Positions 1 through 31,200 of a stretch of DNA of 64,000 nt are shown here, one piece after another; within the stretch, counting starts at the first letter, position 1, and each line of letters opens with the position of its first letter. The position numbers were made by a program, and so were the translations under genes. Origin of the DNA: Lepidodermella squamata (Eukaryota > Animalia > Gastrotricha); contig JBLDXI010000029.1 in assembly GCA_047495785.1 (NCBI GenBank), forward strand, positions 3,224,001 through 3,288,000, given 5' to 3'. Under the pieces are notes generated by a model. It worked only from the letters and a program-made list of their open reading frames with translations, was not told where the DNA came from and did not search any database.

Positions 1-630
1 AGACTCTCCTTAATCAAAATTATAAAAATCAATTGTTTCGAGCAGAGTTCCTTGTAGTGCTTAGCAGTTACGAAACTCAAGTTACAGTTGCCAAGTAGTT
101 AGCTACAGATTGTCTTATTAGTAACGCAATCGTGGCTACTGAATTACCTATCGTCAGTACTTACATTGGAGAAAACAGAAAACCCGAAAAAACCCGATTT
201 TCGGTTTCTACCCGGTTCCAGAGAAAAGCGAAGTACCGAAGTACCGAATTACCGCTAGGGATCGTAGGGATCATCCCTAGGAGTTCCATCGGTCCGCAAT
301 GTGAACTCGGTCAAAGACCAAATGGGGACCCTTATATGTCGATTCGGCTTATCCTTGCCAGTTCTGCTGTCCTACTACGCTCTATGCCCGGTTCGATTAT
401 TCCCGATCACAATCTCCAAACTTTCTGAGCTTTTTGATACATCTCTTCGGTATGGCCTGGTCTAAATGGAAAAACTCTAACGATATATTCCATAGAACTT
501 TAATCATAAGGTGGCAAAATCGTATTTATTCATTTGGAAGAAATTAGCGAAGCCATGCTCGCAACATAGGAAGCTCTATTAATTGTCTAAACTAAGGAAG
601 TCTTTCTTTTGCATCAATTTGATAGATTTA

Positions 631-2582
631 CTAATGTTCCTCAGGATGCCAGACGAACGATTTCGTCGGTTTCATCGTTGATCGAGACTTGTTAGCTTGC
701 GACGGCATAGGTTTAAGATCGCTGAGTGCAATTGCAGCTCCCTCAGTTTCCGTTCCTTCGTCGATGAACTGGTGAACAGCAGCACGCGGGGCTTCGACAA
801 CGCCGAGGGGTAGGATCTCGCGTTGATACACGTCGTTGATGATCTCGGACATGCCGGTGTAGAGCGCGCATAGACCGCATAAGACACCATCGGAGCCTGC
901 GATGATCTTGACAACACGGGATGCTTCTTTTTCTTCACGATAAGCCAAAAAGTCTGCGACCGCAAGCAGGACAAACAGAATCTGTGAAAACGAAAGCAAT
1001 TATTGAATTTTGAAATCGAACTGAGAAGAAGAACGAAACATAGAAATATGCTAAGAAGTGTCTCATAACAAACCGAAAAGTTAATTCCAGTAAAAATGGT
1101 ATTGCTCTGAAACGTTCTCATGGCCAAATTGTATTTGTCAACAATTCTAAGGGGTTCAGGGGATGCAGATCAAGATTTTGAATCCTGTTTGTCGCTATAG
1201 CTCTCGTCTTTAAGACCGTGCGGAAATAGGTTAAAATAGACCTATTCTCCCAGCTGAATTCAGCCGATAACCGATAAGTAACCTAAGTTCTGTATCCCAT
1301 ACTTTCAACCTTGAATTCTATGAAAGTTCCTGAACTATCCTAACTCCCAACCAACCAATATTAGAACCCTGAACCTAGGATTTTTTATTTTAGCTACAAG
1401 GTGTCCTAAGCTACGTAGAATAATTATCGATGCTGGGTTCCAAGACGGCTGATATCGGGAAAATCACTGATTGGTAAAATCGATACTTTGAATCGATATC
1501 GACTCTATAGGATGAAGTATAATTCGTAAACTGACCGCTCATAGCTCGGATTACCCGTAATATGACCGTCTATCGGTTTGGCAAGATAACAAAAAATGTG
1601 AGATTCTAGTGAAGACTAGAAGCTCGATGAATAAAAACCAGACCCGATTAGGAATTTTTTTCTGGTAGTCTATTTTTCGACCGATATTAATACCCACGCT
1701 GAACATTGGATTCTTCATTTTCACTTTATGTTGCCCTAAGCTATGTGGAAAAATTATCGACGATAGGTTCCAAGCCGTTTGATATCGGAATTGATACTTG
1801 GAATCGATACGCGTTATGTTGCGATCGATCGGTTAGGCATGATAATACCAAAGTAATTGACAATTGACAAAATGACAAAATGAAACTCGAAGCTCCATAT
1901 TTGGGAGTTTCAGTGTCTCAAATTTAGACTTGGAACCCTGAGATCAGCTTTTTCAAGCCACGTAAATTCGAGATTTCTTGGTGAAAATATTCAAATAAGC
2001 TTATGCGAAAATGGCAATGATAAATGATAAATTTAAATATCCAGAGTCTCTGTTAAATTTAGGAACAATATAGGAATATGGGATATAAGGCGATTCCGAA
2101 ATAATTGTTTTTTTTTCAGACTTACATCGACTGTGATAAAGGTCAGTCGAAGTGACCAGGTAGATTTTGGCCGCCAGATGCAGACAGTCATGCATATGCT
2201 AAACAGCAGCCAAACCATTAGGTACAATCCAACTGCTAGAGGATTCGGCCCAGGTATCTAAATAATGACAAAAAATCCAGTTAAAAATTCAAATAATTCA
2301 AACAAAAATTCTCAAATTTACCGGCGTAGTCGGCGGTTGGAGGTAGAACAAAAGCACGTAGGACAGCCAGAAAAACGCGTAGCCGAAAAAGGCGATTGAA
2401 GCGAGCAGTTGCTTCTGAAACAGAGCGATAAACGCGCCAACAGCCTGCATGCAAAATCCAAGCGCGAAGCCCATGGCGAGGTTCATTGAATTCAGCGGGA
2501 ATACGGTACAATTGGCGAGATTCAGTACAACAGTTGCCAGGCCAAAGCCGAGCAGGCCGAATGGGCCGGCAATTATAGCCAT
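631..2582 (-). CDS. satP: GPR1/FUN34/YaaH (SatP/AceTr) family acetate/succinate channel, 3 exons (2582-2322, 2257-2126, 981-631), ~247 aa
   Basis: Exons join in phase 0 at GT-AG sites: MAIIAGPFGLLGFGLATVVLNLANCTVFPLNSMNLAMG...FGYAFFWL...|IPGPNPLAVGLYLMVW...LTFITVD|ILFVLLAV...IAGSDGVLCGLCALYTGMSEIINDVYQREILPLG. This is colinear with E. coli YaaH as recalled ([21 protein letters not shown]...SYGSFWL...LFALLAI...AGWIGLICGASAIYLAMGEVLNEQFGRTVLPIG). Six hydrophobic segments. Confidence 0.92.
1370..1830. repeat. Two tandem copies of a dispersed repeat in satP intron 2; further copies at ~3480-3630 (inverted), ~9190-9235 and ~24665-24740
   Basis: Shared core aattatcga..ggttccaag..g.tgatatcgg..aaatcactga...atcgatacttggaatcgata. 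Confidence 0.6.
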
Positions 2583-4179
2583 TTTTTTCTAATTAAATTC
2601 TTCAAATTTAAAAACTAATTAACCTAAATTTCTGTAATAATTTAAAAAATTTAAACTAAATTTTGAATTTTTTTTAAAATAATTATTACGATTAATTACA
2701 TATTTATTACATATTTATGAATTATTTTTTTATTGTTAAGGTATATATTTATTAGAGATACTTTTTTCAAGATAATAAAGAATAGTTACCCATTACTGTG
2801 GAAAATTCTAGGTAGTGGGTCAATTTTGAAGGTAACCGGGTGCTAAAACTGAAAACCGACACAGTCACGTCGTGCTATGTGGTATTCAAGTTTCATTTGT
2901 AAAGTTTTTCATCCAGCTCATATTATTACGTATATTCCTATACTACTGCTATACTACTACTATACAACTCGTGCGCGTAAATAAAATAATAGTATTTGTA
3001 ATTACGCAGTAGTATTATCATTATTTTTGTATTTATTTTTCAATACATACGCAAAGGTATGAATAGGTAAATAACCTGCGTTCTGGAATTGTATTGGTGG
3101 ATGTGTCAAAAGCGAGGACTGGCCACGTCAAAAGCTGCATTTAGTTTGAATAGAATTACAATGAGACAGCGGTAGATATTGTTGCGGCTATAATAATTGA
3201 CCTAGGTCGCGACACACTTTTTTGCGTGGGGACATAATCACGCTGAAAAATTGAAAATTCAGAAAGATTGATGAGGAATAAAATAATTTAACTGAAAAAA
3301 ATGGAAAATGACTATAATTTAATACCTGATATAAGAGCTACTTCGGAATCCGACCATTTCAGGCCAAACCGGTAAAAAAATTAATTCGGGTTTTTTTCAG
3401 GAATTTTTCAGGGAAATTGTACCGAGAAGTGATCTGTCAACCTAAGTTTAAGGTTCCAGAACTAAACAGCCGATAGATCTCCATATTACGATATCGGCGA
3501 GCCTGAAGAGCCGATATCGATTCCAAGTATCGATTTTACAAATCACTGATTTTTCCGATATCAAACGGCTTGGAATCTATTTTCGAAGATTTTTCTATAT
3601 AGCTAAAAGGAATCCTAGGTTCAGGGATGGTATCAGTATGGGAATTATAACCGAAATCGCTAAGAATTCGAAAATTATTAAATCCCAGGGTGCTCAATTA
3701 TGGGACCGATGGAACCTCAGTTTTAGACCCGGACTAGATTTCAATAAATTCCAGGTTTTGTCCTCGACTATGATTAATTTATGGGATAAATCAATAAATT
3801 TTAGACTCATTTTTAAAAGACGAAAAACTCGAAATGAAAAATAAATTTTCGCATATCGATGAAAATATTTATTTAATTTTTCTCACGAAATCACTCCAAG
3901 CATGCGAAAAAAACAAGCTGATATATAGCACGTCCACAATAATTTTAACAAGACAGCAACAGCTGCAGCCTCGGAATTTCAAAAATCACAAAAATAACGA
4001 AAAATAATATCGAATTATCAGCCTCTTCAAAATTTGGATTCAGTTTAATATAAAATTCCAAAAGAAATTCATTTCATTTTCATGTTTTAAGAAAGGCTGT
4101 TGAGCTTGAGTTTTTTCAGTTCATGCCTCGGCGTTGTACTGGGTGGGGCAGCTTGTCCAATGTTGCGTTACATTTTTGT

Positions 4180-6419
4180 TCAATTTTCGCAGCTTGTTGG
4201 CTTTATCTGGCCGGTTGTCACCTCGCCGTGTCGCGTCAGTTTGTGACTCCGCAAACAGTGCGCCTGTCGAAACCTCCGACCGCACACATTGCACGAGTAC
4301 GGAAAAATTCCTGCGCAAAAATCGATGATTTTTTTAATTTTTCATGCCGAGAAAAAATTCGAAAAAATCTCACCCGCGTGGATGTACATGTGCATCGTCA
4401 AGCTTGAAAAAAAATAAAAATAAAATAATTAAATAAAATAAAAAAATAACTAAAAAATTAGACAAAATTTAAAAAATTTCATAACTTCAAATTTTTCATA
4501 ATTTAATATTTTTAATTTTAATTTAATCGAGTCCGAATCCCTGGATAGCTTTGTAGATCTTCATCAAGTTTAAATTAAGACTAGTGAGTCCCCTAGTTAA
4601 TTATCCTCAGCATGTTTATAACCATATATTGGCTGGTTTCCGGCTCGAATGTTGTGACCTACCTCCACTTAATATTATGTAAATTATGACATTAATATAT
4701 GAGCAGTACCAGTACCGTTAATAAACAAATTTTGGTGCGAAAACATGATTTAAGTGCTTGACCTACATTTTCTTTTTCAACAATTGCTAATAATAATTTA
4801 TAATTTATAAATGATTGATTGAAAAACATATAAAATATTGAAGTTAAAATTTTTTATCTAGAACACGAGCCGTATTATCAAGGAGTTTTTATAGCGGGAT
4901 AAATCTTAACATAGGAACCAATGAATCCACAATTTGGTTCAAATTCAAAATTGTTCCTTTCAAATATTCTAGAACTCAAACTGAGCAAGACGGATTGGTT
5001 ACAATTTGGCCTTGTGAATCTACTGTTGCAAAATGATATTTCTGGTTGATTTTATCGCAAGATTCGAACCCTCTCAAAGCTTACTGACCTTTCTAAAAGG
5101 TTCCACTTACACTTGCCAAGTTTCCTATGTCCATCGATACGTTCAACATATAATTTTAAAATAAATCCAATAGATTCCCTATATTAATTTGCAAGCTTAT
5201 ACTTGGATTTGAGCTTCAGACTGGTCAAATTAAACTTCGAATTCGCAAACATTTGTGACCACTTTTTACTATGTTCATGACTTCTCCAAATAAAAGCATT
5301 GAAGTAAAAAAAATTAGAACGCGCAAGTGGCTACACGATGAACCGAAGAAACCGAAAATTGAAGCTTCGAATGTTGTCCAAATAAAGTTGGAATGCATCA
5401 TCATAGTTCGGCTTTTGAGTTTCAATAACTTGGTTAGATTCCAAGCTTCGATTTTTATGAATTTAGAAAATTAGAGGTTCCAAGGTTCAAGAAACCTAAA
5501 AGGTTCCAAGCTTAAAATAGAAAGAGATGGAAAAGACCAAAACTGAATTCTGGGTTTCGACAAACAGCCAAAATAGCTGGAATATACCGACCCTAACTTC
5601 AATTCAATATATGAAGATCTAGGCATACTAGCCATGGCTTTGAAATGTCTAATGAGCTTCAGGTTTGATTAAATTTGCTCAAATTCGAATGGAAGATTGA
5701 ATTAAAAATCAAATTATGTCACTGAAATAAGGTTAAATTGTTTTCAACCAGCTAATTTTCGAAACTTGTTTATTTCTAAAATTGCGATAATATAATGTAT
5801 TAAAAATGGGAAAATTCGGAATTTTAATGAGTTTTATTTTTGAATTTTTTCTAATTTATATTTTTTTATAAAGGGCTCACTTGAATTTTCTGGCGAATTT
5901 TCGGCCACAGGTTTCACAGACGTGCGGCTGGTTGGTCGGGTCGTGCGTCATCATGTGATCCTTGAGGTGAATTTTCTGCTTGAAACCAGCACCGCACGTT
6001 CCGCACCGATGCGGTCGAATGGCCGCGTCGTCGAACTGCCGCCGCCTGCTGTTATTACCTTGCGTTGTCCCAGAATTAGCCGCAGCCGGCTCTGACGGCA
6101 CTGAATTATCGCTGTTATTCGAAACGCTCAACTCCTCGCTCGACAGACACATTGGCATTTCCATCGACTCGCAATCGGGCGATGAAGTTACCGATTCGGC
6201 CGGTTGGTTATGCAATTTTTCCATAATTTTCAGAAATTCGCCGAAAATATCAGCCGGGCCCAGGCCGTGTTGCTGAAGGCTGATAAAGACGTGTTGGAAA
6301 AGTAGTGGCAGTGGCAAATTTTCCGGAATCGTCACGCTTGAATGAACCTCGGCGGCATGGCTCCGCAATTCGGCAAAATTGTCAAAAAACAGCCCACAAT
6401 CTCGGCAGATGACTTCCAT
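4180..6419 (-). CDS. C2H2 zinc-finger protein (one N-terminal finger plus three C-terminal fingers), 3 exons (~6419-5881, ~4403-4375, ~4310-4180)
   Basis: Fingers CRDC..H..EVH, HRCGTCGAGFKQKIHLKDHMMTH, HVCETCGRKFARKF|NLTMHMYIHAG|IFPYSCNVCGRRFRQAHCLRSHKLTRH. Splicing at GTGAG donors completes fingers 3 and 4. Stop TGA at 4182-4180. Confidence 0.88.
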
Positions 6420-7298
6420 TTTTTATATATTTAATAAGTTGCTATAATATATTAGGAATAAATTTTCGAAAATATTGTTATTTACCGCGCTGGGTTAATT
6501 TTCGGGTTTAAAAGCGAGTTTTAACCTCGAACCAGGTACAACGCTTTTCTTTCTTTTATTATTGCTATAAACAATGCGCTTTAGTGCGTTCACTTTTAAC
6601 GCTGGCTGATGTTGAGAAAAAAAACAAACATGCATTACGCTGGACGGTGATTTAAATTTATTATTGTTTTTGCATGATGCTGCAGCGAAAGCGCTTTTAC
6701 ATCACCGCTTTTAAAAATAATAATAATAGAAAAATTGTAAAGCGAAATTTTTTTCTATTCTTATAATAAATGAGCGGTGTTGCAGGTAACGTAACGGCGC
6801 TGGTGACGTTGCGCAGCCTTGTGTATATGACGTTATTTTATTTAAGGCTTAAAACCTGGCCAAAACTGGGTAACAGTGCAGAAAAAATGGAAATTTGGCC
6901 TCGAAAATGTTTATTAAACTTCCCGTTTTAAATTGATGGAATTTAATTGTCAGGGTCAATTGTACGCAATGTTAAATCAGGTCAAGTTAATGAAAAATAA
7001 AAATGAAAAAATGCAAAAAATGAAAATAAACAAAACCCGAAAAATCACGCGTTAAATTAAGGAGGAATTTTTTTAATTGTCTTGTTAGCTTCGGCACTTC
7101 GGCGCAATATCAAGAATGAGCTCGAATCAATATTAATTTTTTAAAGTAAATCATCTCCAATAAAAAATTTGATTTTTAATGATTTTCCGATCATTTATAA
7201 TAGCAAAATTAATACGGTGTCCTAATTTTAGCGAAATATTTATATTAGGATTAGGGACATTTCGGCCTGCCTCAGAATTTATTTGATTTATTTCAATC

Positions 7299-7738: not shown

Positions 7739-9692
7739 TTTCAATCCGCCTTCATCTATGAATTATCGAACCAAGTTATTGGTTGAACTGCTCGGGTTAA
7801 ATTCAAAATTTTACAAATTCCAACAGTGAACTGAAAAAAATTGAAAATAAAACAAAATAAATTGCCAGCAAAAGTTGGTGAAACATCAACAACAACAAAT
7901 AATATTAGTTACATGAGAGCGTATTAAATGGTTAATTAATAAAAAATTCCTGATTTCATTTCTCGGCAACCGGAACGAAAATCGCCACAGCAGCTCCAGA
8001 CCTGCAGGGCTTGAAATCTATCAAAAAACATGCTGCGATTTATTAATAAAAATGAAAAAATATATAAATAAATATAAAAATGAAAATTATCAATTCAGTC
8101 AAAATACCGGAGCCTGGAAATTCGAAACGCGTCCTTTCTGAATTTTTGCTGCACAGGATCAAACAGCATTGAGTTACCTGCTCATATACCTGTTATTATA
8201 ATCTGATACACATATGTATGATGGTTGAACATGTCATCATAATAATATTATTATTGACACGGGGAGGTGAATGTCGTGGAAATAAGAAAAATCAGCGGCA
8301 CTGCGCTGCGCCCGCCTACCTTCGATTGCCATAATTGACCTCGATAATTAGCTCGCTTCATGCCGTTCTATCCTATAAGTGAAGCAAACGCCCAAGCGTT
8401 CAATTGCCGGTATTTAATTTCTTTATTGTTCTATTATTTTTCAATGATAAATTCCGGCAGTTTTTCTCGATTTTTTATCACGGCACGCTGGTGATGAATT
8501 TCAGGTTAAATTTAAATTTTTCGGCGTGAGAATTAAATACGGCTGTTAAACGCGTGAAAATTATTACGTTCCAGAGTAATAAAGTAAAACTTGAGATTAA
8601 TATTACGTGGCTGTGATATTTCTAAAATAAAAAAATTGCGTTAAAATTAAACACGTCATAAGCCTTGGAAGAGGGCTGTTATTATATTTTTTTATTGCTT
8701 TTCGTTCTACAGCGTGTGGACAAAATAATAATGGAAAAGCGTATTTCTGGAAAATTCGCTCTTTTAGAATATGAATAAAGGTAATACTTAGGTATAATTT
8801 ACGAAAAACTGACGAAAAATCAAGTTGGGATTTTTGGATCTCGATGAATCACGTGAAAAAATGGAATTTTTTCGGCTCCCGATTAAACGCACAAATTTTT
8901 GATATTTTACCACTAAACCGCGTTTTTTAGCGCTTGATATTTCAAATTCGATGTTAAATTATCGCTTAATTTTTGCTTTGGACACACCTGAGATTTTATC
9001 GGTAATAAAACTTGATTTGAGAATCCCAGCACTATAGATTTCTCCAAGATATCAAATTTCGAGTTCCACGAATTCACTAGGATCCCAATTTTTCGATATA
9101 ATAATGCCTAACCGATATATCTCCAACTTACGCATATGTTGCGCTTTTAGTGATAGGTTTATGAGTTATACTTCAACCTGTAGAGCCGAGGATATCGATT
9201 CCAAGTATCTATTTCACAAATCAGAGATTTTTAGGATGAATTTGAACTGAAAAAAAAACAATTTTTTGCGAAAATTCAATATTGGAGCTTGATATTTGGA
9301 GTTAGAACGTGGAATCCTAAATTTATTTTAAGACTTTTACAAGAATTCTTCAAATTTACAGCGCACTTTCCGCGCAATCAAATTTGACCCTGATGACCCA
9401 ATGACAAAATTGAGCACAAAATAGGCACGCAAAGGTCATAAAACCACTAATAAATGTCATTTAAATATTAAATTTTTATAAACAATTATTTTCAATTTTT
9501 ATCTGATTTTTTAATTAAAAATTCAGCAAAAAATTACTTATTTGTTCGAAAAATGGGACAAATGCTTTTTATTGAAGAGCGACCTTTCGCCTCCGAATTT
9601 TTCAAATATTTGAATCGCGTGCTCCGAAACCCTTGAGTTGATTCTCAACTTAATTCTCGAGATTATTTCATTTCAAAACAAGCAAAAAAATC

Positions 9693-12157: not shown

Positions 12158-15106
12158 CTATTTGCATCCATCGGCTTCGCAAACTGAAACAAAATCAGAG
12201 CAAATTTTAGTTGCCTAGAAATTTGAAAAGATGTAATTCCGAAAGGGAATCGCAGCTTTATGTAGCAAGAATATTGTTGTCGTACCTTCAGCAACTGAAA
12301 ATAACTTGGATAGAAGTGAATTCTTCATAGGTAGCTACGGTGCTAACTTACGTTTTGAGCAGTCGGACCCGGTGAAACCCGCATCGCAGGCGCACGTGTT
12401 CGGGGCGACGCATTGGCCGCGCAGGAAACATCGCTTCTGGCATACAGCTTTAGCAGAAAAAATATAAAAATTATCAATAAAAAAATAAATCAGTAATTGG
12501 ATGAAACTATTTTTATGGCTAATATTAGGGATTCTGACTTCGGGTTTATTTTGAAATATTAATTTAAAATTGGGACAAAAATTAAACTAAACGGTAACAA
12601 GTGAGGTTTGGCGAGATTTATGACACTGTGAGATTTCGTTGCCCCTTTCAAGATCAAGTAACGAGGATTCGAACGATATCAAAAGGGGGTTTATAGTCAC
12701 CAGGGTTGCTGAGAAAATGGGCTGCAAAGTTTCGAAGCTTCAAATTTCCGAAAAATGCGGTCTCACAAAATTTGGTTTCTACATTGCATCGATAATTCGT
12801 CGCGCAATATATTCTGATGTTATTTACTACGCTTTTGTAGTATCAACCTAATTCTTCCACGTCAACCTAAATCTATAAGCCTTTTCGGCTTTGGGGTTCT
12901 CCCGTCTTTTGAGGAGGATGGGAGCCTCGTAGAGTCTCAATTTAGAAAACTCGGAATCCTCGAGAAAAACTGAGTAAGAACATTTAGAAATCCAAGAATC
13001 GTCCCTCTTCAAGTCAACAAACTGTTTGGCATTTGTTGGAACATGCGCCAAATCCCACTTTCCACTTGTTAATAATAAAAAGATACTGAATAATTCTACA
13101 AACGCGCTAAACAATCTGGTGGCTTCCAGTCTGACGTGCAGATGCATCGACCGGGGCGAACACACGTTCCGCCATTTGCACAACCAGCCGGGCATAAAGC
13201 TGCAGTGATACAAGTAACTGAATATCGTTCGACTACCTTATGACAATGAGAAATTACGTGTATCGCAACGTCCACCAGTCCATCCCGGAGCGCAGGTGCA
13301 TACGTCGACAGCCGAGCAGTTACCTCCGAGGCCACACGCTGGGCTACAAGCCGCTTTGAATTAAAAGCAGATTTTCAAACAATCCAGATACAGGAAGAAC
13401 CGTTCGAACTTACGCCTGCGGCAATCCCAACCAGTCCAACCTGCTTCGCACGTGCATTTGTAGCCACCGAGGCGGGACAGATCCCCAACACATGACTTAG
13501 GTTGGCAGTTTGGGGCGCACGTGATTTCTGTTAAATTTTCGTGCAAATAACAGTTAGAAGCATGAAGCATCCTCAAGAGTACTTTCAATTTGACCATAAA
13601 CAAGTGAAACGTGGGGTTTAGCGTTTAGCGTATTTTCTGTATTTTTCAGCGAATGGCACAAAATGTGTCGACTAGATAAGGGACGATTTTTGGATTCCTA
13701 AATGTTCTTACTCAATTTTCTCGAGGATTTCGAATTTTCAAAATGGAGGCTTCTATGAGGCTCCCATCCACCTAAAAGGACGGGTGCCACCAAAGTCTAG
13801 CCGAAAGACTCATCGATCTCGATTGACGGGGAAGCACTAGCTTGATTCCATACATTTTTTAGAATATCTAGCAAGATTCCTCGCCCGAGAGATTGGATCA
13901 AATAACATAAGAATGCGCGACGAAGAGTTAACGCAAAAGAATTGGCGCAAAAAACTTAATTTTTTAAGCGCGCATTCATGGAAATTTCCAATTTTCACCC
14001 GTAAATTCTGAAGCTTGTTTTCTCAGCTACCCTACCATGATGACTATCAGCCTCCTTTTGATATCGTTCGACTTCTCGTTCTATGATCTTGAAAGAGGCA
14101 TCAAAATCTCACGATGTCAAACATTTTGCCAAACCTCACGTTTCACTTGTTAACAGTCATTTTTGGTTCTTGGGGGTACAGTTAGTTTAACGAGAAGACC
14201 GAAGAATCCAAAAATGACTTATGAATCTGGGTAAAACAATTGCATTCAACCCTCTCATTGCATTAAAATGCATCCTCGTAAACCTCGGGGTTTGCCTTAC
14301 GATTGATAAGCTGGCACTGTTGTCTCAAAATTGCCATTTGTCCGAGGGATAACACAGCTTTGTGTACTGAAACACAGGCGTACTTCATGTTGAACGTATA
14401 AATGTCCCTATAGAAGACAATTGAGCATGTATTATATTCAACTATCAATCTTCATTCTTGATGAATTGATAGTTGCTAACCTTTTTCCTAACGTCAAAAG
14501 GGAGCTGGTTGAGGCTGGAGAGTTGCTGAAGCTTGGAGTGATTGCTGTGTCACAGACACCGTAAAACGATGAGTTTGCAGCGTTGTAAATCATCGCAACA
14601 AATTGCCACGCTGAGAAATCACACGCTATTTCCGTCCAGTTTACGTTTAGATTAGACACGTATAAAAAATTCGGTGTCTGATCCCCGTCAGCTTGTTTAC
14701 TATAACGCCATATATGACCTTTCGCATCTCCATTTGCGCTCCACTCGAAAATACCACTTTTACGTGGGGCGAAGACATAACCAGCTATTGTGAACGAAGA
14801 TGTGCCCATGTCTATTCTAGAATCGTTAACTTCGATCCAACTTGTAGTGTCAGCTTTGTTAGTCTCCCAAGCTGTATTCGGGGCTCCGAACGGTCCCTGA
14901 GCCAACACACCCATGCTTGTTCTGAAAGCAGCGTCCAGCGAAATGCCAGATGCGTCACGTGTGCCGAACAGCTCGTTAAATGGCCAAAACGCTACCAAAT
15001 TTGGAAAATTGAACGCTTGATTCGTTTTGAATTGAGCGACATAAGTCTGGCCATTCACTACTAATGAGTGGACCAGGCAAATGGCAGAAATTAAACTTGA
15101 TTTCAT
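12158..15106 (-). CDS. Secreted LamG/ConA-like (pentraxin/Laminin_G_3-type) domain + 4 EGF-like repeats, copy A (8 exons incl. 9-nt microexon 12286-12294)
   Basis: Signal peptide MKSSLISAICLVHSLVVNG. LVAFWPFNE..GTRDASG, SFTIAGYV and WQFVAMIYN are LamG3-like motifs. EGF exons CTCEAGWTGWDC, CTCAPGWTGGRC, CANGGTCVRPGRCIC, CACDAGFTGSDC. Ends VCEADGCK*. Confidence 0.85.
12596..13070. mobile_element. MITE (AACAAGTG...CACTTGTT TIR family), intronic
   Basis: Ends aacaagtgaggtttgg and cccactttccacttgtt. Body is the reverse complement of 13599-14151. Shorter relative at ~46675-46795. Confidence 0.7.
13599..14151. mobile_element. MITE (AACAAGTG TIR family), intronic, inverted relative to 12596-13070
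   Basis: aacaagtgaaacgtggggttt ... aaacctcacgtttcacttgtt. Shares the gatcttgaaagaggc/gatatcgttcga blocks with 12596-13070. Confidence 0.72.
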
Positions 15107-16293: not shown

Positions 16294-19008
16294 TTATTTA
16301 CATCCATCGACGTCACAAACTGAAACGAAAGTGGAGTAAATTTCAGTTTCCTCGAAATTCGAACAGCTCTTAAATGCCAAAGAAAAGGCTAGAGCTTTGC
16401 TGCCGTACCTTCTTCGGCTACTGAAATATACTTTGGATGAGTGAATTCTTCGTGGGTAGCTAAGGTGATAACTTACGTTTTGAGCAGTCGGACCCTGTGA
16501 AACCCGCATCGCAGACGCACGTGTTCGGGGCGATGCATTGGCCACGCAGGAAGCATCGCTTCTGGCAGACAGCTTTTTCAAAGAATAAAAATTGATCAGG
16601 AAAGCAATTACGAATTACATGCTAAGTGAGCTGGGGTTTTAGCTTGTGAATTCCCCTCAATTATCGCGTTCGGAGTACCCTATAATTCACCTATTTATAA
16701 ATGTTTACGGAATTCATCCTTAAAGGTGACCCTGATTCATTTACTCAGCCTAATTCATCCTAATTACTTGCACCTTATTTACACATGCTGCTTGTGTCTT
16801 CTCTATAGGACGATTTTTTCTGGTGTATTATTGTATTATTATCATCAGATTTTTATGAATAATCTTATAGTGGTTCAACTTGATGACACTTGAAACATCG
16901 AAATACGAAAATTATATACCTATTTTTTAATTTTGATGCAAATTTTTAAAACTACAGCTTCAATCGACGGAGTACTGTATATTAAAACTGAAAAAATCCA
17001 CAAACGTGTTAGACAATCTGGTGGCTTCCAGTCCGACGTGCAGAGGCATCGACCGGGGCGAACACACGTCCCGCCATTTGCACAACCGGCCGGGCATATA
17101 GCTGCAGTAGTACAAGTAAGATTGATCATCGTTCGATTACCTTATGACAATGAGAAATTACGTGTATCGCAACGTCCACCAGTCCACCCCGGAGCGCAGG
17201 TGCATACGTCGACAGCCGAACAATTGCCTCCGAGGCCACACGCTGGACTACAAGTCGCTTGATTTTCAAATAGATTTTCAAACAATCCATAATGGAAGAA
17301 CCGTTCGAACTTACGCCTGCGGCAATCCCAGCCGGTCCAGCCTGCTTGGCAAGTGCATTTGTAGCCACCAAGGCGGGACAGATCCCCAACACATGTCTCA
17401 GGTTTGCAATTTGGGGCGCACGTGATTTCTGTTCACATTTCGAGCAAACAGTTGGAAACATGGAGAATGAAGTGATAAGTATTACGATTAATCATCCTGA
17501 GTAATCTTAATTATTTTTAGGTATTCTTACGGATTCCGAAGCATTAGGGAGGCCGAAGAATGAAAAATGGCTAATGAATACCATATATACCGATTTATTG
17601 GGCTCTGCCTTGTAATTTTTTCAATCAACCCGCAACCCGCAACGAGACCTGCCCTTTATTTCGGCCCGGCCCTAATTTATTTAGCTGCTGTTGAACTTTG
17701 ATCTGATATATACCGATTTATTGGGCTCTGCCTTGTAATTGTTTCAATCAGCAACCCCTTTGCCCATTATTTCTGCCCCATATCTATTGAAGTGAAGCTC
17801 CAATGGTCGCCTTGTATGGGTCGATGTGCTACAAAAGGACGCGATTCTTTTAGCTACACAAATGTGGAACTGCTTATACCAAATAGCTGCTGTCATCACA
17901 TTCCGTAATGAACGATCCTTCCAGCTACAACACCCGTTACTATGAGCCGACAGTTCGAGTCTTAGCTATCGAGGTCCCGACCTTTGGAATCAACTGCCGA
18001 TTGCCGATGAATGTTCACCAGTCTGAGACAGCTCTGGCGCGGCGGGAAGCCACTCACTCGCACTTTTTTGAAAAAATTCTGCTGAATTCAAATAATTTCA
18101 TACGGTAATAATAAATAAATTCTAATTCTGAACATGAGATAAGTATATGTATCGAAAAAAATGCATTCAGCCCCCTCGAAAAACATCCTCTGGGTTTGCC
18201 TTACTATTGATGAGCTGGCACTGTTGTCTCAAAATCGCCATTTGTCCGACGGATAAAGCAGCTTTGTGAACTGAAACACAGGCGTACTTGTTGTTGACCG
18301 ATGAAGCTGAACTCACCCTGGGAGGCAATTATTCGTAACATTTCGAATATCATTCATAGCAAATTTGATTTGTGCAAACCTTCTTCCGAGGGTGAAAAGT
18401 GAGCTGGTTATGGAAAAAGAGTTGGTAACACTTGAGCTGAACGTTGTATTACAAACACCGTAAAGTGATGAGTTTGCAGCGTTGTAAATCATCGCAACGA
18501 ATTGCCACGATGCGTAATTACAGGCAACTTCAGTCCAACCTCCGTTGTTATTAGCGGCATGTAAAAAATTGGGCGTCGGATTCCCTTCATTCGCCATATT
18601 ATAACGACATAAATTGCCTTTCCATGTTCCAACTCCGCTCCATTCGAAAATATAAGCACTGACTGGGACAAAGACAAAGCCAGCGACTGTGAACGAAGAT
18701 GTGCCCATGTCGATTCTAGAATCGTTAACTTCAATCCAACTTGTTGTATCAGCTTTGTTCGTCTCCCAGGCTGTTTTCGGGGCGCCAAAGGGTCCCTGGG
18801 TCAAGACACCCACGTTTGTTTTGAAAACAGCGTCCAGCGAATTGCCCGATGCGTCGCGTGTGCCGAACAGCTCGTTGAGTGGCCAAAACGCAACGATATT
18901 CGGGAAATTAACGGCTTGATTCATCTTAAACTCTGCAATGTACGTCTGGCTATTCACCATTAGTGAGTGGACCAGTAGGCAAATGGCAGATATTAAACTT
19001 GATTTCAT
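16294..19008 (-). CDS. Secreted LamG/ConA-like + 4 EGF protein, copy B (8 exons incl. 12-nt microexon 16409-16420)
   Basis: Tandem paralog of 12158-15106 with the same exon structure. MKSSLISAICLLVHSLMVNS...IVAFWPLNELFGTRDASG. Ends VCDVDGCK*. Confidence 0.85.
17840..18070 (+). mobile_element. Degenerate 3' fragment of a CR1/L2-like LINE ORF2, intronic
   Basis: Similar to 50030-50326 (NDPSSYNTRYYEPT vs NEPSQYETRHFEPT; tatcgaggtcccgacctttggaatcaactgccg = YRGPDLWNQLP). Confidence 0.55.
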
Positions 19009-22635: not shown

Positions 22636-25626
22636 TTATAAAGCAACGCTTGGGTAAATATTGAACATGACTATAGGTGTTATGACAATACATAGAATGT
22701 ATAAAATGGCGCCGAGTCTTTCAATAACACGGGCTACAAATCGCCACTGCTCCTCGCGGAACTCGAGTTCCGCCTCGCGGTACGCCGAATTTCCGCCAAA
22801 AATGACGTCATCGATCGAACTTTTCGATTTTCTCCCCATAGAATTCGGCCCATAATCGTGGATTCCAATGATAATTGAAGATATACCGAATTTGTACGTA
22901 GAATTGTCTTTCGGAATTTTCGAACCGAGCCCAATGGCGTGGCCAATGAAGCGGAACGTGTTGTAGGCGCATGGCGAAATTTGAACTTTACTGCCGCCGT
23001 TGTCTTCTACCATACTTAATGCGTATAATGCGCCGCCCTCGATTAGCTAAAATTAAAAGATTAATTTAGAAATCGATATCAGACGTGTTTTTTTGAGACG
23101 GAAACCATTGAGAGGGCAATATAGGCCATTTGAAGATCGATGTAGATTAACAGAAGAGGAATGTTGTCACTTGATCTGATGGGGAGAAAAAAATCGCAAT
23201 TTTGAGTCACGCAAATTCCGAGCCGCGTTACAGATTTTTTCGACCTAATACCTTGGCATATCGGCGACGACCATGCGTTGAAACACGGAATAGGCCAATA
23301 GGCATGTGAAGGAAATTTCGACTTTTTCAATATGGCCGACTGGAACGCCGAAGTTAGCCATGTGGGCGATTGAAATTAAAACGCTTGGAATGATCACATT
23401 GAGCCTAGTTGAAAAAAAATCAATTTTCAAATTCAAAAATTCAAAAATTTGAAAGTTATTCAACAATTTTTTTTATTCTAATATATTATTTGTTAATTTT
23501 TCAGTTTTTTTATTAATCATGAATTTTTCAATTTTGTTGAAATTTTGAAATTTTACTTGAATTTTGGAATGTTTTCGAAATGCCCAATAATTCTTGAAAT
23601 TTTTCAAATTTTCCTGAAATTTGAAAACTTCAATTATTAAACGGCATAAAAACTCACATGTAATATTGGATTTTTCGTTTGATTTTGAAGTGGAATTCAA
23701 GGTGGTCGAAGGATACGCTTGGGTCGGCGTACGACACGTCAATTTTGGATTGGGACAATGAGACGAGTTGCCACTGTTCATTTTCCTTGAAATATGTTCT
23801 CGAAATATTCCCGACAAAATTTAGCGACATGTATTGCCGAGCATAGCGCCAACTGGAATAAGAAAAAATTAAAAAAAAAAACAATTTTTCAGTATTTATT
23901 CACCTTTCCAGCTCCAACGAGCATGTCTGGAAAAATGTGCATTTTTTAAAATTATGAACATTTAAAAAAAATTGTTTTACCTGTGTATCGAATGGGAAAA
24001 GAGCTAGGTTATATTCGCAATAAATTTCAATGGTACCACCTGGGCTGAAAATGGAGTAGCCATTTGAGTAGACGCGAACTTTCTCGTCATCGCGGCCCAT
24101 CAAAGTGTAACGGCCTTCTGAATTCATCTAAAACAAAGTTGACAAAAAATCAATTAAAAATGGAACGGTGGCAGGCGAATGACGCAAATAAAAGCTGCAA
24201 AATAATGGAAATTTTCGATAAAGTCCCAACGGTATATAGAAACGCCAACTGCTATTTGTGAGTTTTCATTCGATAATTAGAGGTTGATTTGTCTGGGAAT
24301 GAAAAAAATACCTGAGCGAGATCTGGAAGCCAGACAATAGTCGATGGAACGACTGGGAAAGTTTTACCAAAATTAAATTCCAAGAAAATGAAAAGTGCAG
24401 ATATTACCGACGTAGTCGATGCAACTCAGAGGGAAGTCTTCTCGCCAAGCTCTTAGTTCATCCACCCATCGCTGAAAAAAATGGAAATTAAAAATTAAAA
24501 TCAAATGTAAAATATGTAAAATTATTTTGTTCAAATTTTTAAGTGATGTAATTAAATTACTAGATTTCATGTATTTAAAAATTTTAAAAAATGTGGATGA
24601 AGTCCAAAATAAATCCGAGAGTCAAATTATAGGCTCCATCATTCAAGCAATCAGTGATTGATTTTGAGTATCGGAAAAATCACTGAATTGTATAATCGAT
24701 ACTTGAAATCGATATGGAATCTGAAGGCAGGATAATAACGCGTATACTTTCCGCTGATAGCAAATAATACGAAGATTTACTACTCCAACCCATTGGTTCT
24801 AATTTAATTTGATTTTGCCAATAAATCCTATCGGTTTTATAAATCAATCACTTCAAATCGAATTCCGATAATTCATTGTTTAAATAAAAAAATTGAATTA
24901 CATATTATAGTCTAAACAAAAACTATGCGTGCTCTTCAGATCCGCAGAGAAATTTGGTCCGATCTAGTAAATTACCGAAAATTATCGCATGTGTTGCCAT
25001 CGGGTTTTCCCGGGTTATTTCGGTAATTTTCCCACGTTTTCGGTAAAAATACGACAGGATGATGGGATCCTCACAGCTTTTTCAATTTCGAACTTCGGGA
25101 CGCCCAGTATTCAGGATTCCACGAGGCTGTGGTTTCAGTTGAGGTTTGCAATCCCATTCGGTATCAGGAAGCTTCGAAAGCTTCATTTTCGAGAATATCT
25201 CCCTTCATTGTAACGAGGGACTTGGAACCTTATTTTTGGGTAAAATTCCAGAGCTGAAGCTTCAAATTCAGTACTTCAACCCCAAAAAGGTTATGTATCA
25301 GAACAATTTTAGGGATTAAAATGGCTAACCACACTGAGGTATCCGGAAATTCTCATAATTCGATACCGCTCGATAACGTCGTTGATCTGCGAAAATCCGA
25401 ACGTTAAAAACACCTCGACGGTATCATTGCCGTTCAATTTCGGCCGTTGCCAATTGCCGTATGGGTCGAAATATTTCCGCGATATTTGCTGCTCGGATGC
25501 CCTAACCGAATCATTGTAGGGCATTGAACACCCTGGCGCGGGTGAAGAGGGTGGCCCAAATGGCTGTTGCCCGATCGTCATTCCAAAAAATGTCCAAAAA
25601 ACGAGAACATGAAGTAGTGGTAACAT
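22636..25626 (-). CDS. Cys-loop ligand-gated ion channel subunit (nAChR-like, non-alpha), paralog 1, ~9 exons
   Basis: Signal MLPLLHVLVFWTFFGMTIG, RPKLNGNDTVEV, RWVDELRAW, VWLPDLAQ, CEYNLALFPFDTQ|TC, ENEQWQLV, FKIKRKIQYYM|LNVIIP, M2 EKVEISFTCLLAYSVFQRMV, EEQWRFVARVIER and M4. Confidence 0.92.
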
Positions 25627-28228: not shown

Positions 28229-31200
28229 ATGCTTTATCGGTACATTTTAATGGCTGTGATAAGCTTTTCATTTGTTAAAGCTGATACTCTCAAAATCTTA
28301 CTACCTGTCCTACTTCCAATGACAGGCGACGATTCTCGAAACGGTGAAGGATGCCGAGCTGGCGTTGATGTAGCTATTGATGCTTTTAACGCTGGACGCG
28401 CGAGAGGCTACAACGTCGAGCCGATCTACTTGGACGAGGCAGGCGGTGCACTGCAGGCTGCGAAGCGACTAGCGGAATTCACAAGGCGCGGCCTAGGCCC
28501 ATCGGAACAGCTCGCACCAGTTGTTGTCGGGCCCTACTTTACCGGTGGATGCAAGGCAGTGGCGACGTTCGTGCACCACCTTAATATGGTTCAGGTAATA
28601 CAACATGTGTTTCTTTGAGGATTCAAGGGGTCAATTAACCGAACAACGACCAGACCCAGGATGTCTAAACTTGATACGCCTTTTTGCTTAAGGCATCAGG
28701 AATTTAGGGGAGTTTGATACTATGAAGTGATGGTGATGGCTATAGCACCTAAACTCAGTGTGCGAAGTATGATCCGGGAGCTGGGAGTGCTTTCGCGACA
28801 CCCCAGCACCCCTGTACTTCGCAAGGGGCAAGGGGCTCGTTCTTGTAACATGAAAAAGCAGCCACCTTGAAGGGGAGTTTGGGTGACTTTGGTCTTACTG
28901 GATCCACCTCTTGGAAGTTTCTAACCCTCAAGTTTCTGTTAAGTTCCTATGAGCCTAACTAGGTAGCGCAGTGCCGTTCTATGGGGGAAAAATTCCAAAC
29001 TTTCAGTATATAGCCTCCAAAAATCTTCGATCACCCTGGCAGAGGATGAGCATTGCTGTCACACCAAGCAACCATGCAACCTGGTCACATGACTTTGGGC
29101 AATTAGGATCTCCACAAATTAACCACAAGATAACAAAGATCAACATTACAAACGTCTAGGACTTCCGGATACGTTCATTGTGCCGTGGTAATAGGGGGTA
29201 GGGGGTATCGTACCCCCCCCCCCCTCCCTTCTAGTCTGCATGGCGAAGGTGGAAAACCGCAAAAAAACCCTGAAGGACCTTTCGGTCCGAGAATTTGGGG
29301 GTCTAGTTCAAGGGTCTTAGTACTTCGCCTTTAAGTTTCGAAGGATTCATTGTTTCACCCCTATAAACATGACCTTATTTTGCTGATTTTTTTTCTAAAG
29401 GTTGCCATGAGTTGTGGCGCCCCTGCTATGACAGCACAGCGACGTCTGCTGCCAAATTTCTACCGCATTCGTTCCGCTGGCGATATCTCCGTCTTCGCCA
29501 CGCTCCATCTCGTCAAAAATATCGGCAAGTGGCAACGAATCGCGATTCTGACATGGGCTGGCAACGTCTACAACTACCAAATCGCCTCGATTCTACAACA
29601 AGAATCACTGAAGCAAAACATTTCAGTGCCATTTTTCGAAATTGTCGCCGATGTGGATGAAGAAATCATGAGTCATCTTAAAAAATCCGACCTCAGAATT
29701 ATTGCCTACCCAGTCGCCGAAAATTCGATGATCAACAAGTTTCTTTGTCTTACCTATAAAATGGGCATGACCGGATCGCGGTACCTTTTCATACTGTCTT
29801 ACGTTGGCTATGCTGACCCAGACAGCTTGCCGTTGAACATTTCAGACGGTTGTACGAGGGATGTGATAAAAACTCAGTATTTGATCTCGAAATGGACCGG
29901 CGGCCAGTTGGAGGCCGATAATGCGACGAGAGTTTCAGAACTCGGCTACAATTTAACAACTTTCGATGATCTTTACATCCGCAAAATCGGCTTATCAAAA
30001 CAGGTATGTGTTGTCTGATGACATTTTTCAAGCAGCAAAATTTGCGAAAATTTCAAGAATTTCAATTTCAAATTCAAATTCAAATTCAAACTTGAAAATG
30101 GGAAATTGCGAATTTAGCCTGCGAATTTATCCCTCGATCTTGCTCATTTCCGTGACTAGTCCGAAGTTTTCTTATACTCTTTCCCATTTATAGAAACCCG
30201 CCGATCATATAAAACGCGTGCTATGTCACGATGCTGCACTGAAAGGCCTGTTAATCCTGGACGATACTCAGAAATCGCTGTTACGCCTCAACATGAGCCT
30301 CCAAAGCTACGCAACACAGCCTCGACAAATCGCTGCAATAGCTAACCAATCTGCTGCTAAGGTTGCTTACACTGGACTGAGAGCTGGCTGGTTGCAATAT
30401 TCCAGCCGCCTCGAGCTCGATAAGGACCCCCAGGTCGTTGTACAGTGGACGCCGCAATACGGCCCGAAAGTCGAATACAAAACAGTTTTGAAGCCGGGCG
30501 ATAAGAAGGATCCTTACTCCTACAGCGCTTACAATTTCGAAATTATCGACCCTGTTAGTTGGAACACGAAAAACGGCGAACCTCCGCTGCAGAATCGAAT
30601 AATACTGAAGATTACTGAGGACATTCCTCTAACCTTCCTATACTCAATGTAAAGTTTAGCAATCGTATCTTTACTAGTCCAAATCATTCTATCAATATAC
30701 TTAAGGAAATTTTCCCTCATAGTTATAACTGGTCTCTTGTTGAATGCGTCCTGTATCGCGTTTTCTGTCCCAACATCGATTTCACCATCTGTGGTATGCG
30801 TTATTCGCCCTGTTTTCATTGTGCTATCATTCGCAATACTTCACATTGTCATCATATCTCAGCTTATCAATCTTAAAGGCTCTCAAGGTAGTAGAGCGAT
30901 TTACAAAGCTCATGCCGCGACAACAACGTTCCACACAATCGACAATAGGCAGCCGTCTCCTAGAGGCGATAACGTTTTTCTAGAATTACCGCCAACGGTT
31001 TCGATAAAATCAGCTAAGAAATGCAATAGATATATTGTTATGATACCTGTCCTTCTTGATGTTGCAATTCTAATCATTTGGCTGTGTGCCGACCCGGTTA
31101 AATCTAACATTGCTACATCCTCGCTGCCTGTTTATGATCTAATTTCGGACACACTTCAATTTAGCGAAACTGTTGTTTGCTCGTCTAATAATTATACGGC

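Follow-up and report, generated by a model that had tools for sequence, protein, structure and literature searches.

Does a carboxylate channel gene of bacterial appearance in an animal genome descend from a bacterium? The question is raised by a locus on the minus strand at positions 631 to 2,582 of a 64,000-nucleotide (nt) stretch of the gastrotrich Lepidodermella squamata (contig JBLDXI010000029.1, positions 3,224,001 to 3,288,000), referred to below as the window. The locus encodes a protein of the AceTr family (GPR1-FUN34-YaaH; PF01184, TC 2.A.96), and a first-pass annotation read it as a bacterial SatP-type gene that had been acquired and fitted with introns. The current work shows a functional host gene in the nuclear genome, which is spliced, expressed and under selection. 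Sequence comparison places its product in a small, well-supported subfamily, together with triple-domain genes on giant-virus-like DNA, an intron-bearing gene of another eukaryote and an orphan metagenome protein. It is concluded, with moderate confidence, that the gene probably came from a pool shared by protists and giant viruses and not directly from a bacterium, and that it encodes a single-domain, six-helix AceTr.

AceTr proteins were formerly held to be absent from Metazoa, a view revised in June 2026 by an hmmsearch survey (PMC13316224, iScience 2026). The survey describes two clades: short single-domain proteins in protostomes, and vertebrate proteins of about 900 residues, in which three AceTr domains are fused to a Sua5/YciO/YrdC domain. 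The former clade makes the initial view of AceTr as no standard animal family outdated, and finding such a gene in a protostome is thus no longer new in itself.

Gene structure, splicing and expression

The three exons, all in phase 0, join into a coding sequence of 744 nt, whose sole stop is terminal and whose product has 247 residues. The parts of the gene, with the transmembrane helices (TM) that they encode, are the following.

2322..2582, minus strand: exon 1, 261 nt, residues 1-87, TM1-TM3, phase 0; start codon ATG at 2582-2580, degenerate signature IAGPFGL, pore residue F13 (2546-2544), and Y68 (2381-2379) in the motif GYAFFW
2258..2321, minus strand: intron 1, 64 nt, GT-AG, phase 0, 19% guanine plus cytosine (GC), in the loop between TM3 and TM4
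2126..2257, minus strand: exon 2, 132 nt, residues 88-131, TM4 and the start of TM5; its end is V130-D131 (2131-2126)
982..2125, minus strand: intron 2, 1144 nt, GT-AG, phase 0, 36.5% GC, carrying a high-copy host repeat
631..981, minus strand: exon 3, 351 nt, residues 132-247, the remainder of TM5, TM6, the ending LPLGVVEAP and a hydrophilic tail of 52 residues; A170 at 867-865, stop codon TAG at 633-631

Read on the minus strand of 600-2620, with a slash at the exon edge, the splice donors are GCCG/GTAAAT and TCGAT/GTAAGT, and the acceptors are TTATTTAG/ATACC and TTTCACAG/ATTCTG. Contigs of two public sequencing runs were placed on positions 1-5000 of the window. The first run (X1, 2024) covers the whole stretch in the manner of genomic DNA; the second (X2, 2015, from a separate study) contains about one quarter of the sampled words and is taken to be RNA. 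Both exon joints, 981/2126 and 2257/2322, are present exactly in X2 contigs, with CT..AC on the plus strand corresponding to GT..AG on the gene strand; the shorter side of the 2257/2322 joint measures 80 letters. Neither joint was found in X1 contigs. The exons are covered by X2 contigs at 2322-2401, 2372-2568 and, without a break, 669-960, and X2 depth is zero over most of intron 2 and over 2673-3340. The sole X2 signal in an intron is of low depth and lies in the repeat-bearing part of intron 2. The outermost X2 contig ends, at 2568 and 669, are probably branch points of the graph and do not define the ends of the mRNA. An AG 7 nt ahead of the start codon is a possible acceptor for trans-splicing. 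The three-exon GT-AG structure first proposed from the letters alone is therefore borne out, both junctions having been recovered exactly in RNA-like data.

X2 contigs also map to 3883-4309, which is 1.3 kb upstream of where the AceTr gene starts; they carry small indels and several mismatches. They may represent an unannotated transcript or a transcribed repeat, and no joint from them to the AceTr exons is listed.

A second variant of the gene, read at 2372-2568 and 865-886, occurs at about half depth in X1 and is present in X2 contigs as well; it may be an allele, a homeolog or a paralog. Its 13 readable differences fall in codons 15, 19, 20, 30 (two changes), 39, 40, 44, 64, 69, 70, 163 and 170, and every one of them is synonymous, which points strongly to purifying selection on both copies. 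Spliced X2 contigs and this record of silent change together attest a gene that is expressed and maintained.

Integration into the host genome

The composition of the gene is fully adapted to the host and resembles that of neighbouring host genes: its coding sequence has 51.6% GC, with 57% at third codon positions, against 51.6% and 58.6% in a C2H2 gene 3.3 kb away. The background depth of X1 is about 40-85; over a repeat in intron 2 it rises into the thousands, and to as much as tens of thousands. This repeat is a short, very high-copy, dispersed element, possibly a miniature inverted-repeat transposable element, and the early observation of host repeats in the intron is confirmed both by this depth and by further copies in the window. 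The repeat and the neighbouring genes can be located as follows.

1409-1613 (approximately) and 1739-1790: repeat in intron 2; other window copies at 3507-3604, 9073-9231 and 24669-24761
5880-6422: C2H2 zinc finger
12338-13624 and 16923-17432, minus strand: EGF-like cysteine exons, in two near-duplicate sets (CTCEAGWTGWDC and similar)
29335-30015: ANF_receptor exon

The two EGF-like sets suggest tandem duplication of a gene with EGF repeats. Reverse transcriptases of two kinds are also among the neighbours. The animal surroundings claimed by the first-pass annotation thus hold for the C2H2 and EGF genes; the Cys-loop channel exons that it named were not found by a crude motif screen. Introns, host repeats, host composition and host neighbours all mark the locus as integrated into the host genome.

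Family membership and domain architecture

Membership of the AceTr family is indicated by profiles over the whole domain. Pfam PF01184 scores 29.4 bits on exon 1 and 26.1 bits on exon 2 (cut-off 25), and NCBIfam AceTr_1 scores 62.4 bits on exon 1 (cut-off 50, model positions 3-79) and, colinearly, 43.4 bits on exon 3 (model positions 126-176). A hidden Markov model built from seven Clostridia-type AceTrs gives the spliced protein 138.8 bits over positions 13-187 of 187 (175 positions). Six hydrophobic segments on the Kyte-Doolittle scale, at approximately residues 7-30, 35-56, 59-81, 92-116, 121-146 and 154-175, are colinear with the helices of SatP, so that hydropathy and alignment agree on a six-helix protein.

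The family motifs are present in altered form. At TM1 the signature NPAPLGL(M/S) reads IAGPFGL in the window protein, with 3 of 7 positions identical (P, G and L), and (A/G)GPFGL throughout the subclade; Candida Ato7 departs from the signature at 4 of its 7 positions and Ato8 at 3, yet both are classed in the AceTr family. In TM3 the SY(F)GFW motif reads GYAFFW, retaining Y, F and W with S replaced by G and G by A. The protein is not a SatP ortholog, since its scores with the SatP equivalog NF007941 (46.4 bits for exon 1 and 32.5 bits for exon 3) lie far below the cut-off of 297.

The architecture also differs from the vertebrate ATO type, with its three AceTr domains and Sua5/YciO/YrdC: the window protein has one domain, and the open reading frame (ORF) ends 52 residues past it. 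No other AceTr domain was found in the 64-kb window by tblastn with three AceTr proteins as queries. A further domain past the start of the window is improbable, given that X2 has a contig spanning 669-960 without a splice and that the reading frame closes at 631. The protein begins at the signature helix, as had been noticed at the outset, and lacks the N-terminal extension of the fungal type, giving it a short, bacterial-like architecture. The hydrophilic tail also exists, but at 52 residues instead of about 60, and its supposed richness in Ser, Thr and Lys, which make up 25% of it together, amounts to a mild enrichment only.

Closest relatives

An exhaustive HMMER search with exon 1 covered 1.84 billion representative proteins, and the best 150 matches were considered. 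One match is strong: P0001, a metagenome protein of 631 residues with three tandem AceTr domains (E 1.7e-61). The remaining matches listed have E values of 1e-13 or weaker, at 35-47% identity. Over the full length, identity is about 47% to each domain of P0001, P0151, P0181 and P0182, and also to P0152; about 42% to the orphan metagenome protein P0004 and to a Porphyridium transcript from MMETSP (P0014); and about 36-39% to the best bacterial proteins. Derived characters point the same way: the window protein and its close group have in common the start at (A/G)GPFGL, a two-residue insertion in W[KR]PKS, a longer loop between TM5 and TM6 and the ending LPLGVVE(A)P.

The 150 best matches of the exhaustive search and the 120 best of the profile search include no named animal protein, and those of the 150 with obtainable names include no fungal one. 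With an alignment of the clade as query, the top profile matches outside it came from Porphyridium (MMETSP), the gregarine Blabericola and the ciliates Halteria and Stylonychia. In the Atlas cluster nearest to exon 1, the commonest known phylum is Rotifera. Eight-residue stretches of exon 1 matched 246 times in 185,579 bacterial and archaeal species genomes, and none of these pattern matches was confirmed as a relative. A scan of JGI metagenomes gave 79 loci with a single member of the clade (L084, below); those of the others that were placed in trees fall among mostly bacterial sequences, with 39-49% identity on exon 1. No publication connecting AceTr genes with giant viruses or rotifers came up in a literature search.

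Triple-domain genes on giant-virus-like contigs and in a eukaryote

Four metagenomic loci bear on the origin of the subfamily.

L084, 5998-7935 (JGI Ga0326727_10004431): triple-domain AceTr in an intronless single ORF, on a 42-kb contig with 34% GC
L001, 5001-6953: triple-domain AceTr in an intronless single ORF, on a contig syntenic with that of L084
L002, 2769-3973: AceTr protein on a giant-virus-like contig
L003, 141-2860 (ENA ERZ25039486, contig_138413): triple-domain AceTr with GT-AG introns, 47% GC, with a YL1 gene nearby

The triple-domain proteins on the giant-virus-like contigs measure 645-650 residues, and the contigs, at 34-37% GC, consist of tightly packed intronless ORFs. That of L084 also encodes an AP endonuclease, a cap guanine-N2 methyltransferase, an FtsJ-like methyltransferase and a C2H2 protein, and that of L001 shares both methyltransferases and a C2H2 protein. 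Neighbours of the AP endonuclease in the Atlas fall in clusters that are 96-100% Nucleocytoviricota, and the structural Atlas neighbours of an adjacent orphan ORF of 449 residues are 95-100% viral, nearly all of them Nucleocytoviricota. We conclude that L084 and L001 are giant-virus contigs or viral insertions. Scans of IMG/VR with P0001 and with the clade alignment gave no match, so the viral reading of these two loci stands on gene content and Atlas neighbours.

L003 is read as eukaryotic because GT-AG introns break its gene. The introns lie at equal places in all three domains, with one shifted by 5 nt in domain 3, and the 20-kb context holds only YL1 and faint TPR matches. Its three domains cluster together, separate from three lineages of viral domains, implying that triplication was independent in L003 or that the copies were homogenised there by concerted evolution; this clustering suggests a parallel to the triplication of vertebrate ATO. 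When the neighbours of the viral and eukaryotic loci were compared with those of the window for a co-transferred block, the AceTr gene alone was in common.

Phylogenetic position and origin of the gene

In an 84-row IQ-TREE analysis (LG+C20 PMSF), the window protein falls in one group with the viral domains and L003 at a support of 99/93, and P0004 joins them at 100/97. The next step, at 99/92, is a protist set of the Porphyridium transcript, three unnamed proteins with N-terminal extensions, and Blabericola. A careful tree of 76 rows, with more of that protist set added, ciliates among them, gives the same core group 99/95 and a 15-row clade including P0004 100/98. Membership of the clade is thus solid; the deeper donor is placed far less firmly by these trees and the approximately unbiased (AU) test below.

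The reading that best accounts for these results is descent from a gene pool of protists and giant viruses. The likeliest course would be an old acquisition by the animal lineage, followed by full compositional adaptation, gain of introns and purifying selection; donor and timing are inferred here.

Several observations weigh against this reading. The link of the clade to the ciliate-type group reaches only 95/58 in the 76-row tree; in a quick tree of 106 rows the clade stands in a polytomy and the protist link is absent. The AU test does not reject a grouping of the clade with an 11-row, mostly Bacillota group (log-likelihood difference 14.6, p 0.225), and the window protein sits on a long branch of about 1.0-1.2 substitutions per site. 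The RNA nature of X2 is a guess, though its spliced contigs would be hard to account for otherwise. On the functional side, NPAPLGL is degenerate in the window protein (IAGPFGL) and throughout the subclade. In yeast Ato1 this motif is reported to be essential for uptake. Finally, the trees include none of the protostome AceTr sequences of PMC13316224, and a vertical animal clade therefore keeps a share of the probability.

Such vertical inheritance would mean that an old eukaryotic or animal AceTr was kept in a few protostomes and lost elsewhere, and that giant viruses captured a host copy. We regard it as unlikely. Single-domain AceTr proteins are known from protostomes (PMC13316224), the prevalence of Rotifera in the best Atlas cluster fits an animal lineage, the composition is host-like throughout, and intronless viral copies are what capture from mRNA would leave. 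Intron positions bear on the matter too. Intron 1 of the window gene and one intron of L003 are both in phase 0, follow a Pro codon and precede the conserved G(W/L)YL of TM4 by exactly nine residues; this match hangs on the placement of the loop gap, however, and with the placement chosen by MAFFT the two introns lie 7 columns apart, so that a common position is suggestive only. Intron 2 of the window gene is absent from L003, L003 has extra introns, and the viral copies have none. Against descent within animals stand the want of any named animal protein among the best matches given above, the patchy distribution of the family in animals and the strong divergence of the vertebrate forms.

Direct transfer from a bacterium into the animal lineage with subsequent gain of introns, the viral and eukaryotic relatives stemming from the same or a parallel bacterial transfer, is judged distinctly improbable. 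It would explain the short architecture without N-terminal extension and the fact that AceTr_1, a bacterial model, passes its cut-off on exon 1 alone; the clade arises from a mostly bacterial bush in all trees, and the AU result permits a Bacillota sister. The first-pass claim of a bacterial gene acquired and intronised accordingly stands in one part, a real, intron-bearing, expressed gene in the host genome, and is not supported in the other. No bacterial donor is visible: identity over the full length is about 36% to the best bacterial proteins, versus about 47% to the viral and eukaryotic relatives, and the scan of prokaryotic genomes with exon 1 stretches confirmed no relative. All of the closest relatives are eukaryotic or viral and have indels in common that bacteria lack, the careful trees give their best support to a protist group as neighbour, and one intron position may match that of L003.

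Contamination or an assembly chimera, in which the gene of a microbe or food organism was wrongly joined to host DNA, has nothing specific in its favour beyond the facts that linkage to host genes comes from the assembly alone and that the run contigs are short, and it is very unlikely indeed, because two spliceosomal introns are removed in the independent 2015 data, intron 2 houses a repeat found thousands of times in the genome, X1 depth over the gene equals that of the flanks (with the second variant at about half), and composition and neighbours are those of the host.

A wider proposal, that this AceTr subfamily circulates between giant viruses and eukaryotic hosts, that the animal copy came from the circulating pool, possibly via a giant virus, and that the domain was fused three-in-one in viruses and in L003, is offered tentatively and is judged unlikely. 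If true, it would parallel the triplication of vertebrate ATO and imply a pore ring built as a dimer of trimers; in that case giant viruses would possess a carboxylate channel that might serve to manage acetate or pH in infected cells.

Pore residues and proposed function

SatP and Ato1 form hexameric anion channels, and every pore has four acetate sites along its length (PMC8379382). In the alignment to SatP structures, F13, Y68 and A170 of the window protein correspond to F17, Y72 and A164. The FLY constriction (F17, L131 and Y72 of SatP) reads F13-V130-Y68, or FVY: V130 falls in the L131 column, with D131 next to it at the boundary of exons 2 and 3. Val in this column is also found in P0004 and in the Halteria protein. 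The Glu equivalent to E144 of Ato1 is absent. The substitutions L131V in SatP and L219V in Ato1 raise lactate transport, and smaller residues at the site let in succinate (PMC8379382).

By analogy with these channels, the window protein most likely assembles as a hexamer with its own anion pore in each subunit. The pore would pass acetate and similar short carboxylates passively, down their electrochemical gradient. Lactate or propionate may pass besides acetate at V130, because the change from Leu to Val at this site widens specificity toward lactate in SatP and Ato1. The direction of transport would be set by gradients, giving either export of fermentation acids or uptake of microbial acids.

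Comparison with known AceTr systems

The bacterial SatP/YaaH proteins (Escherichia coli, Citrobacter koseri; PDB 5ZUG, 5YS3) and AceTr_1 resemble the window protein in having one six-helix domain of about 190 residues without an N-terminal extension, the F and Y of the FLY constriction, the equivalent of A164 and an LPxG C-terminal end. They differ in overall sequence (about 36% identity), in NPAPLGL in place of IAGPFGL, in L131 in place of Val and in the Glu of the E-x-KKGNTF stretch, which the window protein lacks; the latter has in addition the two-residue insertion after TM4, the longer TM5-TM6 loop, the 52-residue tail and two spliceosomal introns.

The viral triple-domain AceTrs (P0001, P0151, P0181, P0182 and L084) are nearer, with about 47% identity, the (A/G)GPFGL start, W[KR]PKS, the long TM5-TM6 loop and the LPLGVVE(A)P ending. 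In contrast to the single domain, two introns and Val of the window gene, they have three fused domains (614-650 residues), no introns, dense AT-rich DNA of viral type and Leu at the FLY site.

Fungal Ato1/Ady2 and Gpr1 belong to the same family and follow the same pore logic, as the gain of lactate transport by L219V illustrates (PMC8379382), but they have a long N-terminal extension, a conserved NPAPLGL and E144. The protostome ATO proteins of PMC13316224, compared here by description, are alike as single-domain, prokaryote-like AceTr genes in animals, and the vertebrate ATO proteins of the same survey, about 900 residues long with three domains plus Sua5/YciO/YrdC, are very divergent.

Implications for the AceTr family

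Two findings are new in this case: giant-virus DNA and the eukaryote L003 are the only places where close relatives were found, and the subfamily shows repeated tandem triplication. The viral and L003 proteins are possibly a third and a fourth instance of triplication of the AceTr domain. The gene also offers a clean case in which a bacterial look need not mean a bacterial origin, and a membrane channel now joins the genes that may pass among giant viruses, protists and small animals.

The usual transporters of short carboxylates in animals are the MCT (SLC16) and SLC5 carriers. An anion channel of SatP type that an animal retains, expresses and holds under selection would, if its function follows that of its characterised relatives, represent a different solution to carboxylate transport.

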